Assembly (NCBI RefSeq): GCF_963506605.1
Contig: NC_083281.1
Coordinates: 37,572,001-37,636,000 of the forward strand
DNA length: 64,000 bases
Reading direction: 5' to 3'
Origin: Zootoca vivipara
Lineage: Eukaryota
The translations under genes and the position numbers were made by a program. This document shows positions 43,958 through 64,000 of the stretch, one piece after another (position 1 is the stretch's first letter; each line of letters opens with the position of its first letter). Under the pieces are notes generated by a model. The model worked only from the letters and a program-made list of their open reading frames with translations. It had not been told where the DNA came from and made no database searches.

Positions 43958-44151
43958 GGGGAAGGGATGTCGCTCAGCAGTAGAGCATCTGCTTTGCATG
44001 GAGAAGGTCCCAGGTTCAGTCCATGGCATCTCCAGGTAAGGCTGAGAGTGTCCCTTGTCTGAAACTGTGGAGAGCCACTGCCAGTCAGTACAGATAATGT
44101 TTAGCTAGATGGACCAATGGTCTGATTCAGTATAAGGTGGCTTTCCTATGT
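43958..44151 (+). mobile_element. Squam3-type tRNA-derived SINE
   Basis: tRNA-like head GCTCAGCAGTAGAGCATCTGCTTTGCATG...GGTTCAGTCC followed by SINE body; no acceptor stem. Confidence 0.8.
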
Positions 44152-47129
44152 ACATATCAGATTGTACCACATATTTTTCAAAACACACATTACAGTGCAA
44201 TTGTAGATGGGTCTACTCAGAAGTGTTTTTAAAAAACAGCCTATTGAGTTCAATGGGGCTTACTCCCTGGAAAGTGCCTTAGCATTGCAGTCTCAGACCC
44301 TGCTTGTGGCACACCAGCACATCCCAGTTTCGGACTCGCATTGCCTTTACAGATTTTGCACACCATTTTTGTCCCCAGACCGAAGTACAACCATCACAAA
44401 ACAATCAATTTAGGAACAAGCAACCCCACTAGGAAAAGTGTGTGGGGAGGAGGGAACCAGTAGCATCATAAATACAACTATGGGAAACAGACAGCATGGG
44501 AAGCATGTCTAAATAAGTCTGCTTGGGACATTTTCCTAAAGGCTGGGAGGGAAGAGGCAGGGAAGAATTTCCAGAGCCTAGGCACACCTCTGGAAAGGTC
44601 CTGTTATATGTACTGTCCAATTGCACATCAGATGGTGGTAAGATGTAGAGGAAAGCCTCTTCAGAAAGTCTTCGCTGGTGAGCAGAGTCCTGTGGAGGGA
44701 GCAAGGTAAGGGGTCCTTCAGATATCACAAACCCAAGATGTATACTTAGAACTGGGCTTCAAAAATACACTGAGGGCCACCTTTACCTTTACCAAGTAGA
44801 TATAGAGTCTGTGAATAAAGAGTCTGTGGCAGTAGCAGAGTATAGTTGTCCAACAGTCTTCAGAGTCAGCCCCATGCAGAGGATGTTGCAGTAGTCCAGC
44901 CTACATGTAATCAAAGCATGTGTAATCGTGGCTTGATCTGCCTTCTCCAAGAAGGGTCACAGCTAGCACCTTAGTCACAGATGCACAAAGCACACTTTGT
45001 GGCCACTGTAACAACCTGCCCTCCAGAGGTAGGGCTGGGTCTAGAGACACTGTCAGACTGAAAGCCTGATCTTTCAGAGGGCGTGCTACTCCATCCAGAT
45101 CCTTAACGCCTACAGATGTCTGCAGATCAAGTTCCTGTTAAAGGCACAGGTACAAAGGCTGATAAAAGAGTTGGCAACCCTAGCCTAGGACTTTGCTTCC
45201 TCCCCATCCTGTTCTAAGAATTGCCAATTGCTTAACCCTCCAGAAATCTGATCTTTATGTCCAGCTCTGAGAGATGCAAGACAGAGAGGCACTTTGGCTA
45301 TTTCTGGCATGTAACAAACAGGTTTGTCACCCAGGAGGTCAGATCTCCTTCCCTTCCCCCCCCCCCAGCGGAGGGAAGGGAAGGTGGACAGAAACAGCTG
45401 AGAAACATTAGCAATGAGCCATCCTGCCTGTGGAGGGTCAGAATCTGTATGCACGCTCAGTTCAGATATCAAATGCAGTCATGTAGCATGTCGCGTCATG
45501 AAGTCCACACGTGGCAAGCCTTGATGGAAGGAATTATTACAGAAGGGTACACCAACCTTTTCTCTGTGTTGTGGAAGATAAGGTGTCTGTCTTGCCCAGA
45601 GACACAGACTGTGCTTTTAGTTACACGCAACAGCCTAAACCATATCCTCTATTCTCCCACGATGGGTTTCTGCAAAAAGAACTGTACAGAGCTGGAGTAG
45701 CTAAGTAGCTGAAAGTTTGAGCAGTGAGGGAACAACTCCCTGGTTCAAATCACACCACAGCTATGAGCTCCCTTGGTTGACCTGGGCCAAGCTACTATTT
45801 TAAAGCCTCAGGCCCACCCTGCCAGCTTTGTGCTAGGATAGTAATAATACTGGCCCACTTTACAGGAACATAGGAGGCTGCCTTCTACCCAGTCAAACCA
45901 ATGGTCCAGCCAGCTCAGTATTGTCTGAAAAGGTGGGCCTTTTCAGCCTAAAGGCCACGTTCCCTTCCTGGGAACTTTTCAGGAGGCCACAAATCAGTGA
46001 AAACTAGTCTGGTGGGTCGCTTGGTTAGAGTGTCAGACTACCAGGTTTTGATCTCCCTCGGCCATGGAGCCCCCAGGGTGACTCTGAGTCAGTCACTGCC
46101 TCTCAGCCTAACCTACCTCACAGGGTTGTTGTGAGGATAAAAGGAGGAGGGGGATGGCTATGTATGCCACCTTGAGAGCCTTGGAGGGAAAGGTGGGATA
46201 TAAATGCAGCAAATAAAATACCAGTGGGGGGTGTGGGCAGAGGCAAAAGTGGTCAGAACAAAATTTTAGCTTTGTAAAACAGGCTAGTTTATCCATACAT
46301 CCACAACCCCCCCCTCTAGCCCCCATCCAAGTAAGTAAGAGGCATTCACAGAAGTCAAAGAAATTCCAGCATGGGTGCAGCCAGGATTTTTTTTTGGGGG
46401 GGCGGACATTTGTTGTGAGGTGGCAGAACTGATATGATTAGTCAGTAAATTAAGTATTTCTATTGTTTTACTTGATCTGGGGGGGGGAGTTCCCCATAGG
46501 CATAGCCAGGGGGGCAGGGAGGGGCTGCTGCCCACCCTAAATCAATAAATTAAAAATAAGTACATAGCAAACTGAGGTTCTGCGCCCCTTAAGAAAAGGC
46601 CTGCCCCCCTCAATAAAAATCCTGGCTACACCCATCGAGCTCTCCCACCCCACCCCACCCCCTGGCTATGCCCATGAATTCCGGCTAGGCAAAAACACCC
46701 AAGGAGAGTACGAAGTAGGGCGGTTTGAGAGGTGTGGCCTGGGGGAGAGAGGGTGTGGCTAAGAAAGGGTTGTGGCCTTGAGGCAGTCCCAAGGGCCTTA
46801 GAGAAACTGTGGGGTAGAATGCATTTGGCCCCTAGATTAGGGTCACATCTAAAGGCAATTCCAGTTGACCGTAGAGGCATAGCAAACCTTTGGCCCTCCA
46901 GATGTTACTGAACTACAACTCCCATTGCCCCTGGCAATTGGCCATGCATCCTGGGGCTGATAGGAATTGTAGTTCAGCAACATCTGGAGGGCCCCAGGTT
47001 CTCCACTCATCTCTTTCAAATTCCTCCAACCGTTTTGTGCAGGAGGCCAATATATATATGTCACCTATGATATTCCTTTACAAAGCAGCGTTATCCTTAA
47101 TACGCCTTACAGGCCACGCTTCCGCTCCA

Positions 47130-48319
47130 ATGGCACCCAAGAAGAAAGCCCCAAAGAAGAGCAAGCCGTCAAAGATGGAGACGTCTACGAATGTCACCAT
47201 GGTAGAGGACTCTTCTCTTGACATTGACCACCATCAGCAACTCGACGGCTTGTTTGAAAATGGTTCAGGTGGCTTCCTCTGCACTGCCACAGAAGTCACA
47301 AATCCTAGCCATGGAACCAGTGTTCTGGAGGAGATGAGCCTCATGCACCAGGAGCGTTTCCTCTGTGACCTCACTATCGTCACAAAAACAAAATCCTTCA
47401 GCGTTCACAAGTTGGTCATGTCTTCCTGCAGCGAATTTTTCAGAAGCCTGCTGAAAAAAGACCCAAACCTTCAACAAGTGGACCTCAAAGATGCCTCCTC
47501 CTTAGGCTTGGCTACTGCCATTGCCTACACCTACACCGGAAAGCTGAACCTTTCTCTGTACACCATTGGGAGCACCATTTCCATAGCCAGCCGCCTGAGG
47601 ATGTATGCTCTGCTCAACATGTGCACAGACTTCCTCATCCAGGAGATGAATGTGGAAAACTGGATGTACATCGCCAACCTGGCAGACACATACAACCTCA
47701 GCCAGGCGAAGGATGCTGCAAGGAAGTTCATCCGAGAATGCTTCCTGGAGTTCTCCGACACTGAACAGTTCATGAAACTCACCTTCGATCAGCTCAACGA
47801 ACTGCTGATGGACGACAACCTTCAGTTCCCCAATGAGGTGGTGGTCTTTCAGATCGTCATGAAATGGATCGAGTTTGATCCCAAGCGGATCAAACATGCC
47901 GCCGACCTCCTGAACAATGTCCGGTTTGGCACGATCCCAGCTCACGACTTGATCAACTACATCCAGCCTGTGCCGTGCATGATGCAGAACCCGGAATGCC
48001 ACAAGCTCCTGGTAGACGCTATGAATTACCACTTGTTGCCTTATCAGCAAAATGACCTCCAGTCCAGAAGGACCAAGATTCGAGGAAGCCGTAAAGTGTT
48101 GCTCATGGTTGGGGGCCGCCCGTGCTCAGCCGAGAAAGCTCTTAGCAAAGATGTAAGCTACAGAGATCAAGAAGGAAACTGGAATAAGCTAACAGAGATG
48201 CCCACCAAATGTTTTAACCAGTGTGTTGTGGTGATGGATGGATTCCTCTACGTGGCTGGTGGAGAGGATCAAACTGATGCCCGGAACCAGGCAAAGCATG
48301 CAGTTAACAACCTGTGCAG
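47130..48319 (+). CDS. KLHL31-like coding exon 1 (BTB, BACK, first Kelch repeats)
   Basis: Acceptor ccttacag| at 47112; ATG 47130; donor TGCAG|gtaacg, phase 2. Confidence 0.92.
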
Positions 48320-50870
48320 GTAACGGGGAGGTTGCATCTTGAGTGACACTGTCTAAATAGGGTGCCCAAGCAGGGGTCTTCCTCATGCCTGAAATCCATG
48401 TTGGGGAACTCCAATTCCTATTATCCCCAGCCATCATGGACAATGGTTTGGGGAGCTGTATTCCAGCAACATCTGAAGAGGCCAGCAGTTTCCCAGCCCT
48501 GGATATACTGGGGGTCACCTGCCAGAGGCACAAGTAGGCAGAACAACAAATGTGAATTTTACCAACTGTAGACTAGTTTCTGTACTCCCAGCCCTCTCTA
48601 TCCCCCGTCTAGGCAAGCAAGAGGCATTGTCAAAACTCAAATACACATTCCAGCCAGTGGGGAAAAAAATCAAAGACTGTATGAAGGGCAGGTGAGAGGT
48701 GTGGCCTGGGGAGAGTCCCACGGGCCAAGTAGAGAGACCTAGTGGGTTGTATGTGGCCCCTGGGGCTGAGGTTCCCCACACCTGATGTATAAACTGCCTC
48801 ACAGGGCAGAGAAAAAGAACCTCAATTTAAAAATAGCATCACAAAATAAAAATCACATATAGGTAGGTAGGTAGACAGATACAGTACTGTAGATCTGAAT
48901 ATCAGTATCGATCTCTAAATGCTTGTGTAAAAAGCCGTATTTTAAGTTGGCTTCTTAAGGACAGTCCTGTAGATGTCTTACATATTATAAGAGGGAAGGC
49001 ATTCTAAAGTTGGGGGAGGGGGGTCACCACCGAAAAGGTCCTTTTCAGGGCAAACAGCTAGCAAGGCTTGAAGGGTTTTGGGGTGGTGAGGTGGACTGAG
49101 GTGTATGGAGGAAAAGGCTATCCCTGGCTGCTAGTGCTGCATGCTGCCTCCACTGTTGGAGGGAAGATGCCTCTGAAGACCAGTTTCTGGGAATCACAAG
49201 TGGGGAGAGTTGCTGGTGCACTCAGGTCCTGCTTACACTTTCTCCATAGGCATCTGGTTGGCCACTGAGAACAGGCTGCTGAACTAGATGGGCATTTGGG
49301 CTGATTCAGCAGCCAGGCTCTTCTCATATTATGTTCCTTTGGACAGAGGAAAGTACTTATTTCTAACCCTGATTTTTATTGAGGACAGAAGCCTAAGGCA
49401 TGTCACAAAAAATTATTTCATGGGCGAGAGAGACATTTTAATAGACATCCGTTTGAGCCAAAAAATCAAGGGGCACAACAGGCAGAGGAACTTTAGATGT
49501 GTTTTGAGGCAGTATGTTTTTCCCCCAGGGGCACCTAGAAAAAAGGGAATGTTCTCCATGACTCTGGGCTTAGTGGACTTATGGCCCTGCTGCACTTATT
49601 TACAGTCATACCTCGGTTTAAGTACGCCTCGGTTTGAGTATTTTCAGTTTAAGTACTCCGTGGACCCGTCTGGAACGGATTAATCCACTTTCCATTACTT
49701 TCAATGGGAAAGTTCGCTTCAGGTTAAGTACGCTTCAGGTTAAGTACAGACTTCCGGAACCAATTGTGTTTGTAAACCGAGATACCACTGTATTTAGAAA
49801 ATGTATAACCTGTGACCCCTTAAGTAAACAGCCCTCAAGTTTGCTAGGGGCCCCATCTGAGGAGTGGGACCCCAAACTGTTACTTGAGGCCTCACTAGGC
49901 AAACTCAGACCCCCTGCTTCAACCACACATAAGAAGCCAACACAGCAACACCTGTGGAGCCTGCTGGATAAGCCCAGTGGTCCATTAAGTACAGCGTCCT
50001 CTTCTCACAGTGGCCAAGCAGATGCCTGTGGGAAACCCACAAGCAGGCCCCAAGCACAGCTTCCAACTATGGAGGCAGAGCAGAGCATAGCCATCACACT
50101 CAATGGCGACAATGACAAACTCTCTTCCCCTCTGCAGGTATGATCCCCGTTTCGGCACCTGGCTGCACTTGGCCAGCATGTCACACAGAAGAACTCACTT
50201 CAGCCTCAGTGCCTTCAATGGGAACCTCTATGCCATCGGGGGACGTAATGCCAAGGGGACCCTAGTCTCTCTTGAATGCTACATCCCTTCAGCCAACACC
50301 TGGCAAGCCAAAGCAAACATGGACTTGCCCCGCTGCTGCCATGCCAGCGTGGTCATCGATGGCAAGATCCTGGTGACGGGCGGCTACGTCAACAACGCCT
50401 ACTCCCGTACCGTTTGCAGCTATGACCCCGCCACAGATTCATGGCGAGATGGTGCATGGCTGAGCAGCCCCCGAGGCTGGCACTGCGCTGCCACCTTAGT
50501 AGATCGTGCCTACGTCCTGGGCGGCAGCCAGTTGGGTCCCAGGGGGGAGAGGGTGGACGTCATCCCTGTGGAGTGCTACAACCCTTCCACGAACCAGTGG
50601 AGCTACATGGCCCCCCTGCCCACCGGCTTGAGCATGGCGGGGGTGGCCACCCTCGGTGGGCAAATCTTGCTTGTCGGTGGTTGGAATGAGAGTGGGAAAA
50701 AGTATCAGAAGAGCATCCACGCCTACAATCCGGACCTGAACGAATGGACAGAGGAAGGAGAACTTTCTGAAGGTACCGTGGGGGTCTCCTGCTGCACCAT
50801 TGCCCTTCCGCACTCAAGCACCAGGGGCTCCAGAGCCAGCTCAGCTGCTTCAGCAACAGTCAGCATTTAA
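47130..50870 (+). CDS. Kelch-like protein 31-like (BTB-BACK-Kelch, CUL3 adaptor family), spliced gene span, 640 aa
   Basis: Exons 47130-48319 and 50138-50870 sum to 1923 nt; MAPKKK... start, BTB ([28 protein letters not shown]), BACK, Kelch repeats, C-terminal ...[13 protein letters not shown]. Colinear with human KLHL31 as recalled, but in a different syntenic block, so treated as a paralog. Confidence 0.93.
49603..49790. mobile_element. Tc1/mariner MITE (same family as 6366-6686)
   Basis: TA|CAGTCATACCTCGGTTTA...TAAACCGAGATACCACTG|TA. Confidence 0.85.
50138..50870 (+). CDS. KLHL31-like coding exon 2 (Kelch repeats)
   Basis: cccctctgcag|GTATGATCCC; [14 protein letters not shown]...GWHCAATL...VSI*; TAA 50868-50870. 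Confidence 0.93.
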
Positions 50871-54247: not shown

Positions 54248-61291
<7,044 letters not shown>

Positions 61292-61340
61292 CTTGGAGGC
61301 GTGGAAGAGATCGCGATAGCCCCGGAACGGGATCTTAAAC
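61292..61340 (-). promoter_or_regulatory. RPL11 TCT/5'-TOP initiator
   Basis: Minus-strand ATCTCTTCCAC (CTCTTCC at 61309-61303) shortly before the ATG; YY1 motif overlaps the start codon. Confidence 0.75.
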
Positions 61341-61403
61341 GCCTAAACTGCGCTGGACTGCCACAGAGAAGGGGAGCTAGAAGGCTTGCTTGAAGGGGAC
61401 GTT

Positions 61404-61418
61404 GCTGCCCTCTGGAGG
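61404..61418 (-). promoter_or_regulatory. CTCF-like motif upstream of RPL11
   Basis: Minus-strand CCTCCAGAGGGCAGC fits the CCASYAGRKGGCRS core with one mismatch. Confidence 0.5.
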
Positions 61419-63253
61419 CTGGAGGGTGGAACGGCACGCGATCCCCATCAAGGGATAACGACGCTGTGTTAATCTGCCGCTAGACTAGGGCGGTCGCTTA
61501 CAGATCGCCCCCCCCCCCAAATGACACGGATTTGCATGAAAATTGTATCTGCTGTTTTATATGTGCAGATGCAAACCTATTTGAATAAGATTTGCTTTCA
61601 GTACTTTATATGTGCAGGTGGAAATTTAGACATCATTACTATACTTTCAATAGAAATGTGATACATCTCACTGCAGAAGAGAAGACTGTCATAGAATCAT
61701 AGAATTGTAGAGTTGGAAGGAACCCCAAGGGTCATCTAGTCCAACCCCCTGCCATGCAGGAATCTCAACAACCAGGCAACCATTGTATCTGCTCAGTATG
61801 CTGTCGAGGTGCTGCTACGGTAGCTGTGGATGGGCAACTTCCAGGCCCCTCCAGCTCTCCCTTGTTAGGGTTATTTATTGTTAAACTGAACAATTTAATT
61901 ATCCTTAGGACTGAACAGCCTTTCAACCTGAGAAGTCCTTTAAACAGAAGACTGTCCTCTGTAAAGTCCAACATGTGACTACCCTACACAAAACTGTGGT
62001 TTTTGGCTGTAATAGAGTAAGGATTGTTTTCAACAAAAGCCACATTCACTCCATACATTAAAAGCAGTATCATACCACTTTAAACAAACATGGATTCCCG
62101 CAAAGAATTCTGGGAGCTGTAGGTTGTTACTAATGCTGAGAGTTGTTGGGAGACCTCTAGTCCCCTCCTAGAGCTACAATTTTCATAGTGATTTAAAAAC
62201 GCTGTTTCACAGGAAACTCTGAGAAGCCAATTAAGAGGATGCAGTATTGGAGTACTAAGCAGGTGTCTTGTCAGCAGTCTAGCTGCAGTATCCTCTGATT
62301 TAATAGACATTCTCCCCCTCTCGAGGAATTTTAGCTGTGCAATGAGGGAATAGACTAAGACCAAAGAGACTTGGGTTCAAATCTCCACTCCACTGTGAAG
62401 CTTCCTGGATGTGCTTGTGCCACATAAAAAGGTAATAAATAAGACAAACACATAAATAAACTTTAGGAAATCTATTTATTATATTTTTCTCTGGTTTTTA
62501 AATAAACAAAGTCCATCCACCAGAACACCAACACAGCTCACCAATAAACAAAACAATGAGGGAAATGAAACACAAACTATTTTCATCCCAGACCAAACTA
62601 GGCAATCCATTTCTAGCTGAAGTAATACCCAGGCAAGCAAAAGGTGGGGATACTGTGCCAGCCTTCCTTCCCCAACCTGATGCCCTCTAGATGTTTTAGA
62701 CTATAACTCCCATCAGCCCTGGCAAGCATGATCCTGAGGCTGATGCAAACATGCCTGTGTTGCCTGGGACTAATGGGATTGTGTTGCCGTCCAAACATCT
62801 GGAGGGCACCAGATTGGGAAAGGCTGAATGCCAAAGCAGTACATTATCAAATCCTGTATATTGTGACTGAGAAGACCAAGCAACTTGGAGCCACAGATGT
62901 AGCTTTAACTAGGTGTTATGGGCATAAATACACAGGGAAATTAATTTTCAGGACAGAGCACCAACCCACAAATCAACATTTTTGGAGAAGCAATTTCCCA
63001 ATTAAACAGAATACAAAAGGGGTAATGCTCAAAAGGGGTAATGGAATTGGCCTGTTTTATATTAGGAATAAGGCCATCTATCTACATTCCTCTGGTATAT
63101 TATTTCACCATATACTCACATATTTTGTCTTCCTCATATGGTCAAATCATCAAGGGATAAATGTGTAACAGGAATATTGAGGATCATTGCATGTGCTACC
63201 ACTGTTACCATATAATCTATATCTCTGATGAAAGTCAGGAGTGCTTGAGATGC

Positions 63254-63281
63254 TAATAATAATAATAATAATAATAATAAT
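63254..63281. repeat. (AAT)n microsatellite
   Basis: About 9 units, direct reading. Confidence 0.9.
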
Positions 63282-63610
63282 CCTTCCATGGGAAAAATGT
63301 GCAAGAGAAAGATCCCCACAGATTTTGCAAGAAGTACCAAGAGGAGGAGCTGACAATCATCTGCTATCCTGCTCACAGATCTCTTGTCTTACCTAAACTC
63401 CATGTGGATTTTCCAGCCCAGTGACACATCTTCCCACACAAATTCCATCCTGTAAAACACTGCCTCTAAAGCACTGCTGTGGATTACATCAAAATGTTGC
63501 TAGGTAGGTCAGGATGAGATGGCTATGATTGGCCATTAACAAAGATATTCTAAAACACATTTTCTCTCAGTTCAGAAAACCAAACAGTGGAAGCTGATAA
63601 CCCTACATTT

Positions 63611-64000
63611 TTAAGTTGCAGTTTGTGGGAGAACAACTGACACTAAAACTATCAGGCCAAAGGTAATCATGAGAGGCCAAGTCATATCAGGATTTACAAT
63701 CTGGGCAGAACAGCGTCTCTTGCGGGACACAGTGAACGACTTCATCGTTCCTTCCTTCTCCTTCAGCTGCACCCATAAGAATTTCAGCTTTGTGGGTGGG
63801 AAGAACTTTGCCCCAAACAGGTTGCATTTGGGTAGGAAGAAGTGGGTCAGGTGAGCAGTGGCCACCTTGTGGATGAAATTGGCCAAGACCCTCTCGAAAC
63901 ACTGAGGAACTTCAGAAGGCTTCCAGTCTTTATTGGCCTTCCACTCCCACAGGGTGTGCAGGAAGGACGTCCGACTGTGGTAGGAACTCAGATGAGCCAA
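63611..64000 (-). CDS. cGAS/Mab-21-family nucleotidyltransferase-like protein, C-terminal part (5' truncated by window), with hydrophobic C-terminal tail
   Basis: Frame open from the window edge: LSSYHSRTSFLH...W...CF...F...T..L..FFLP..NLF...FL..Q has the same spacing as human cGAS SSYHVKTAFFH...W...CF...F...T..L..YFIP..NLF...FL..Q; TAA at 63613-63611. Confidence 0.8.
   Translation of the reverse strand: MAHLSSYHSRTSFLHTLWEWKANKDWKPSEVPQCFERVLANFIHKVATAHLTHFFLPKCNLFGAKFFPPTKLKFLWVQLKEKEGTMKSFTVSRKRRCSAQIVNPDMTWPLMITFGLIVLVSVVLPQTAT

Follow-up and report, generated by a model that had tools for sequence, protein, structure and literature searches.

Our picture of cGAS–STING signalling comes almost wholly from therian mammals, which have one cGAS each. 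The canonical protein is characterised by a basic, disordered N-terminus, by the lysine K254 (human cGAS numbering here and below), by the acidic residues D227 and D319, and by a zinc thumb. In nucleotidyltransferases of the cGAS/OAS type a third metal-binding Asp is required for catalysis. Sequence motifs have been published that delimit the cGLR active site as h[QT]GS X8-20 [DE]h[DE]h X50-90 h[DE]h (PMC9980059). Not all proteins with a Mab-21 fold conform to such a motif, and MAB21L1 and MAB21L2 share the fold but have no complete active site (PMC9980059). A second group of relatives is known from fish, where cGASb makes minimal or no cGAMP: the killifish protein yields no measurable product and the zebrafish protein a minimal amount (PMC13694710). 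For the grass carp protein, cGASL or cGASb, binding to STING (MITA), competition with cGASa and a reduction of interferon have been reported (PMC7582293, PMC11264591).

The locus described here belongs to a lizard, Zootoca vivipara. The window, by which we mean the whole stretch of 64,000 nucleotides that was analysed (contig NC_083281.1, positions 37,572,001 to 37,636,000 of the forward strand), contains the end of a gene that resembles the fish cGASL/cGASb genes in lineage and build, and departs from them in its active site. The features that matter for the argument are as follows, in coordinates of the window.

63614..64000, minus strand: coding sequence of the last exon, for residues 390-518 of P0071, a cGAS-like protein of 518 aa (translation; 129/129 identity to P0071)
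63611..63613, minus strand: stop codon TAA (translation)
63764..64000, minus strand: C-terminal two thirds of the Mab-21_C (HhH/H2TH-like) domain, including Y396/H397 (Pfam PF20266, ungapped cGAS alignment and residue table)
63713..63724, minus strand: basic cluster RKRR (residues 482-485), separated by 11 residues from the hydrophobic segment that follows (translation)
63629..63679, minus strand: predicted tail-anchor membrane segment W497-L513 (WPLMITFGLIVLVSVVL), followed by the five residues PQTAT (Kyte-Doolittle, AlphaFold helix, orthologs)
61874..63610, minus strand: putative 3' UTR, up to the last of four candidate poly(A) signals (pattern scan)
62475-62480, 62299-62304, 61894-61899 and 61874-61879, minus strand: poly(A) signals, the first ones 1.1-1.7 kb past the stop (pattern scan)
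55567..59006, minus strand: RPL11 coding exons 2-5, on the same strand as the cGAS-like gene and downstream of it (tblastn with the RPL11 part of P0061/P0002; ORFs)
59006-58821, 57740-57606, 57559-57359 and 55677-55567, minus strand: the individual RPL11 exons (tblastn)

The exon extends past the right edge of the window, and its frame runs from 64000 to 63614 through 129 sense codons with no internal stop, while the two remaining minus-strand frames at 63611-64000 contain many stops. The encoded peptide matches the Pfam profile Mab-21_C (PF20266) with E 3.3e-14 and 53 bits against a cut-off of 24. In a HMMER search of all PDB sequences its residues 5-78 align without a gap to residues 274-347 of mouse cGAS (E 1.6e-9), and every match at E<=1 is a cGAS; a Protein Atlas search returned generic Mab-21_C clusters only, with scores below 0.9. 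A sequence-only reading of this DNA had already described a stop-free frame of 129 codons entering from the right edge on the minus strand, and the translation, closed by the TAA at 63613-63611, agrees with it. The same reading had named a set of human cGAS anchors and matched them without a gap over about 74 residues, which is the extent of the HMMER alignment; SSYH (with Y436/H437), Arg at K439, W, CF, FFLP and NLF are all found in the peptide. Its assignment to the cGAS family, for which it had suggested a Mab-21 profile search, is upheld by the Mab-21_C match and by PDB sequence and top fold matches that are exclusively cGAS, and its placement of the gene directly upstream of RPL11 by the same-strand RPL11 exons that run from 59006 downwards.

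Gene structure, splice sites and frame upstream of the window are taken from P0071 (518 aa), a database protein of this genome. An exhaustive HMMER search with the fragment led to a 528-aa Anolis protein, named "cyclic GMP-AMP synthase-like" by NCBI and 71% identical to the fragment over its residues 1-128, and a search with the Anolis protein led in turn to P0071. The C-terminal 129 residues of P0071 are identical to the window translation at 129 of 129 positions (tblastn; BLASTP), the sole mismatch in BLASTP being a TTG that the tool renders as Met. P0071 contains both halves of the family signature, Mab-21 (PF03281) at residues 177-350 with E 7e-20 and Mab-21_C (PF20266) at residues 367-468 with E 2e-17. 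In an AlphaFold model built from a 43-row alignment the N-terminal 108 residues are disordered, the core reaches pLDDT values above 90 and a terminal helix spans residues 493-515. The best 50 PDB matches that Foldseek returned for this model are all cGAS, with TM scores of 0.81-0.86 (on target), E values of about 1e-26 and sequence identities of 26-30%, so that P0071 is predicted to share the bilobal fold of canonical human and mouse cGAS.

To separate orthologs from paralogs, named vertebrate cGAS and cGAS-like proteins were placed in a maximum-likelihood tree (49 rows, 457 columns, LG+C20); the tree is unrooted, there being no lamprey protein, invertebrate cGLR or MB21D2 among the proteins retrieved. 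It has one dominant split, between a clade A and a clade B, with support of 100/100, and the same split was recovered in two quick trees. Clade A comprises proteins of a shark (Chiloscyllium), paddlefish, amphibians, mammals, a bird, turtles and squamates (Rhineura, Elgaria, tegu and geckos) together with teleost "cgasa"; the amphibian proteins that are named "cGAS-like" all fall here. Clade B, with 26 rows in the careful tree, comprises proteins of another shark (Mustelus), coelacanth, lungfish, sturgeon, teleosts, crocodile and turtles, and the squamate "cGAS-like" proteins including P0071. Rhineura has one protein in clade A and one in clade B, and Pelodiscus has one in clade A and two in clade B; for this reason the window gene is, by its sequence relationships, a second cGAS-family gene, a paralog distinct from canonical CGAS and not a relocated copy of it, which is what the sequence-only reading had proposed. 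Because cartilaginous fish, ray-finned fish and tetrapods occur in both clades of this unrooted tree, the duplication would be older than their common ancestor. The fish proteins introduced above belong to the same lineage as the window gene by virtue of grass carp cGASL (P0257), which lies in clade B at 100/100 and is the only one of them placed in the tree, zebrafish and killifish cGASb being assigned to clade B only by length and naming.

Within clade B, the squamate proteins and one Pelodiscus protein (P0079) form a sub-group, B2, with support of 100/100, and the remaining turtle and crocodilian proteins make up B1. A tree constrained to unite every turtle row of clade B in a single clade is rejected (log-likelihood lower by 105, p-AU 0.0003), with the proviso that this group was chosen after inspection of the tree and that long branches are involved; the squamate stem itself is long, at 0.4-0.5 changes per site. 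The B1 proteins (e.g. Chrysemys P0003) are the nearest sauropsid relatives of the window gene in clade B. They have in common with it the loss of R236 and K254, but unlike the window protein they keep the acidic triad and the zinc thumb, and the turtle B1 models have no hydrophobic tail whereas the crocodile model has one. In a separate quick tree a platypus "cGAS-like" protein, P0269 (XP_028936041, 504 aa), falls among the amniote clade B proteins beside B2 with an SH-aLRT of 95, although its end branch of 1.5 makes the precise placement unsafe; its membership of clade B implies that the lineage has not been lost in all mammals. No bird, therian or amphibian protein of clade B is among the matches listed, an absence that is provisional.

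The active site is where the squamate proteins part company with the rest of the family. In a table of about 85 sequences in human cGAS numbering, E225, D227, D319, H390, C396, C397 and C404 are kept in nearly every row. About 75 rows besides the squamate copies keep the triad, the exceptions being one caecilian protein (D227E) and a few alignment gaps, and outside squamate B2 zinc-ligand changes are single events, C397R in Pelodiscus B2 and H390Q in one gecko. Squamate B2 proteins, by comparison, carry D227E in all ten cases, D319N or D319S in all nine that have the position (one Podarcis isoform has a gap) and C397R or C397Y in all nine with that position present. Two lacertid proteins, the one from the window among them, have additionally changed H390 to N and C396 to Y, and in snakes and Sceloporus S213 is changed as well. 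In P0071 the triad E-D-D is replaced by E-E-N, and the zinc thumb H(X5)CC(X6)C is broken, the equivalents of H390, C396, C397 and C404 being N, Y, R and C. Set against the cGLR motif, the first part reads PGS (T211P) where [QT]GS is expected, the second, EFEV, agrees with [DE]h[DE]h, and the third reads LNL where h[DE]h is expected. The equivalents of G212/S213, E225, R376, S378, Y436 and H437 are kept as in canonical cGAS, the last two corresponding to Y396/H397 of P0071. Since Pelodiscus B2 keeps E-D-D, loss of the triad falls on the stem branch of squamates. In platypus P0269, which does have a hydrophobic C-terminal tail, D227S and D319R are found, the GS motif is missing and zinc-thumb ligands are lost; here the triad has disappeared separately from squamates.

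The surfaces that contact DNA have changed as well. Squamate B2 proteins have lost R236, K285, K350, R353 and K394 and have less basic cores. K254 is kept in 37 of the 40 clade A rows and in no clade B row, being Leu in P0071, and the net charge of the N-terminus lies between about -9 and +9 in clade B compared with +10 to +48 in clade A (with crocodilian exceptions at +14 and +28); in P0071 it is +1 over 119 residues. The window protein is accordingly without the basic N-terminus, K254, D227, D319 and zinc thumb that define canonical cGAS, and adds a predicted tail anchor. The sequence-only reading, for which the triad and the thumb lay outside the window, had entertained a nucleic-acid sensor and pointed to the GS motif, the acidic residues and the Zn-thumb as the places to look. 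What P0071 presents there is PGS, E-E-N and N/Y/R/C, with three of the four thumb ligands changed and basic DNA-contact residues gone; no competent site was found, and the sensor proposal is not borne out.

The W497-L513 region has a mean Kyte-Doolittle value of 2.26 over 18 residues and coincides with the terminal helix of the model, and the preceding RKRR cluster reappears as SRKR or SRKK in the lizard and Pelodiscus orthologs. A near-identical membrane segment is present in Rhineura, Podarcis, Anolis and Pelodiscus B2; the lizard segment reads DMTWPLMIT.GL and that of Pelodiscus B2 DMSWPLMITVGL, so what is conserved is the sequence and not just its hydrophobicity. By a criterion derived from the present data set (a Kyte-Doolittle mean of 2.0-3.2 over 18 residues), a hydrophobic C-terminal segment marks nearly every row of clade B and no row of clade A. 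It was found in clade B members from shark, sturgeon, teleosts, coelacanth, crocodile, Pelodiscus, platypus and lizards, and is absent from the turtle B1 and lungfish models. The N-terminus of P0071 is polar and charged and has no signal peptide. A single C-terminal hydrophobic segment without a signal peptide is the arrangement expected of a tail-anchored protein, with most of the chain predicted to lie on the cytosolic side. P0071, whose segment is no more than about 30 residues away from the C-terminus, is on this evidence a predicted tail-anchored membrane protein. Three colubroid snake orthologs, P0074 (Crotalus), P0078 (Pantherophis) and P0080 (Erythrolamprus), are without the hydrophobic tail, which python and lizards keep. 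The colubroid protein may be soluble, or the colubroid models may miss the true end; if the tail has indeed been lost in these snakes, the anchor would not be indispensable everywhere.

How such a protein might work can be sketched from these features and from its fish relatives. Intact open reading frames of about 500 codons are found in lacertid, amphisbaenian, iguanian and snake orthologs, with identities of 50-68% when compared with the Anolis protein and as high as 77% when compared with the window protein. That these frames have stayed intact across squamates despite the loss of the site is taken as a sign of purifying selection. The predicted tail anchor would insert post-translationally into an internal membrane, either the ER or the mitochondrial outer membrane, leaving the core in the cytosol. 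With no third metal-binding Asp the core would form no phosphodiester bond, and most likely the squamate protein cannot make a cyclic dinucleotide. With the zinc thumb and key basic contacts lost, it is unlikely to bind DNA, or to dimerise on it, as cGAS does. What would be left is a protein tethered to a membrane and serving as scaffold or decoy; by binding a signalling partner, STING or MAVS for instance, it would modulate interferon signalling. The fish cGASL/cGASb proteins have the same build, with a short non-basic N-terminus, a Mab-21 core and a C-terminal hydrophobic tail, and by analogy with them the lizard protein is probably a regulator of STING/MAVS signalling. Of the two roles that the sequence-only reading had offered, nucleic-acid sensor or regulator of STING signalling, it is the second that fits better, again by that analogy, while the first does not. 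The analogy has a limit: in the fish proteins the E-D-D triad and the zinc thumb are complete and the core is strongly basic (net charge +16 to +24), against E-E-N, a broken thumb and a reduced set of DNA-contact residues in the window protein, and because the triad of grass carp cGASL is intact its biology may not carry over to the lizard. On balance we think it fairly probable that the locus carries an intact clade B cGAS-paralog gene whose product is a tail-anchored pseudoenzyme, likely making no cyclic dinucleotide and acting as a scaffold or decoy that tunes interferon.

The residues that survive in the site could also be read as those of a working enzyme, that is, an active cGAS-like receptor which responds to nucleic acid, or to some other ligand, by producing a nucleotide second messenger. 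The cGAS fold is retained according to Foldseek, the equivalents of G212/S213, E225, R376, S378 and Y436/H437 are all in place in the Zootoca vivipara protein, its sister protein Pelodiscus B2 has E-D-D, and a Glu at the second acidic position is permitted by the [DE]h[DE]h of the cGLR motif (PMC9980059). However, Asn or Ser replaces the third acid wherever a squamate copy has the position, contrary to h[DE]h, T211 has become Pro, three of the four zinc-thumb ligands and many basic DNA-contact residues are lost, and fish cGASb, with its site intact, already shows minimal or no cGAMP synthesis (PMC13694710); an active receptor is very improbable. The degraded catalytic and zinc sites would also suit a silent or decaying gene whose frame in Zootoca vivipara is merely unbroken so far, as would the zero reads in three RNA-seq runs and the long squamate stem branch (0.4-0.5 changes per site). 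But the same substitutions and a frame of about 500 codons recur in lacertids, Rhineura, iguanians and snakes, which is not expected of neutral sequence, the last exon has neither a premature stop nor a frameshift, and the membrane segment hardly differs between lizards and a turtle. The RNA sample was also shallow and of unspecified tissue. We regard decay as quite unlikely, if somewhat less so than an active enzyme.

A lost active site is compatible with other kinds of function too, and the analogy with fish cGASL would mislead if the protein were a membrane-anchored Mab-21 pseudoenzyme with a non-immune role, for instance a developmental or structural one like that of MAB21L1/L2. The loss parallels MAB21L1/2/3, which have no predicted functional site (PMC9980059), and we found no immune data in the literature for any sauropsid copy. 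On the other side, the window protein lies inside the cGAS/cGASL lineage and not with MAB21L, and its nearest studied relatives, fish cGASL/cGASb, are interferon regulators. PDB sequence matches at E<=1 and the top fold matches are all cGAS, with no MAB21L structure among them, so MAB21L1 and MAB21L2 are not its nearest relatives and an affinity to MAB21L, TMEM102 or ITPRIP is unlikely. To our knowledge no tail anchor has been described for MAB21L1 or MAB21L2. A non-immune role is hence doubtful, though it is the most plausible of the alternatives considered here. That the gene is simply the sole CGAS ortholog of Zootoca vivipara, moved beside RPL11, is ruled out for practical purposes, its probability being negligible: it lies in clade B at 100/100, apart from the canonical cGAS of Rhineura, Elgaria, tegu and geckos, and Rhineura, a close relative of the lacertids, has both genes.

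The gene is already present in public annotation. The orthologs in Anolis, Sceloporus, Rhineura, Podarcis and snakes bear the NCBI label "cyclic GMP-AMP synthase-like", and fish members of the lineage have been the subject of studies. In the open literature we found no paper on sauropsid or monotreme cGAS-like genes, none on a tail-anchored cGAS, a transmembrane fish cGASb or the tail anchor as a trait of the lineage, and none on active-site loss in squamate cGAS-like proteins. Reptiles have kept a second cGAS lineage with a predicted membrane anchor, one known from fish studies only as a negative regulator of a puzzling sort. In squamates nature has run the experiment: the chemistry of the enzyme appears to be gone and the protein and its anchor are kept, so that any scaffold or decoy role could be separated from catalysis. 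"cGAS-like" annotations in reptiles should meanwhile not be taken for extra DNA sensors. A wider scenario can be offered tentatively, and is as a whole less likely to be right than wrong: a tail-anchored second cGAS lineage may have existed since before the split of sharks and bony fish, been kept in sauropsids and platypus and lost in therians and birds, and become an obligate pseudoenzyme in squamates and independently in platypus, its conserved membrane segment contacting a signalling protein of the membrane, STING or MAVS for example, and setting the threshold of cytosolic nucleic-acid sensing.

Expression, which the sequence-only reading had wished to see checked, has been probed at low depth. 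Three RNA-seq runs from the same species and of unspecified tissue, each covered to about 7.5 million reads or some 6% of the run, gave no reads on the exon or on the 1.7 kb that follow it; across 61843-64000 coverage is zero apart from repeat-derived reads. A small run of uncertain kind, X6, yielded an exact 175-base contig over 63605-63779, which may be DNA. Partial, repeat-like matches account for the reads at 62653-62814 and again at 61681-61842. In the latter interval RNA-seq coverage is very deep and consists of partly fitting reads that run into unlike sequence and carry numerous variant letters, a pattern typical of a dispersed repeat with transcripts from many loci and not of a local transcript. 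Between 62706 and 62808 the RNA reads, and a contig as well, step back by 103 bases at a joint that holds five extra letters; the joint recurs in all four runs and hints that a tandem duplication, or a variant of a repeat, sets these sequences apart from the assembly. A simple repeat at 63245-63289 in the putative 3' UTR, read as poly-Ile or poly-Leu in ORFs at 63134-63376, was skipped in read mapping.

Downstream, a G+C-rich stretch at about 60500-61500 is likely the RPL11 promoter. Two rattlesnake models, P0002 (Crotalus horridus) and P0061 (Crotalus adamanteus), have cGAS-like exons fused to RPL11 exons, and one of the fused Crotalus models bears the name "60S ribosomal protein L11". They look like read-through annotation errors, and they imply that the head-to-tail order of the cGAS-like gene and RPL11 is common to snakes and Zootoca vivipara. 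On the plus strand at 46890-50870, two long open frames, one for a BTB-BACK segment (46890-48323) and one for at least four Kelch repeats (50103-50870), appear to be parts of a single gene of the KLHL type, divided by an intron of about 1.8 kb; a KLHL gene beside human RPL11 is not known to us. At 43963-44034, also on the plus strand, there is an Rfam tRNA match of 37.7 bits (gathering score 29), which may represent either a tRNA gene or a repeat of tRNA origin. Lastly, a teleost model outside the tree, P0130 of Scortum barcoo (1020 aa), joins Mab-21 and elongation-factor Tu domains, and would fit a cGAS gene beside an eEF1A gene, the neighbourhood that the sequence-only reading gives for canonical CGAS.
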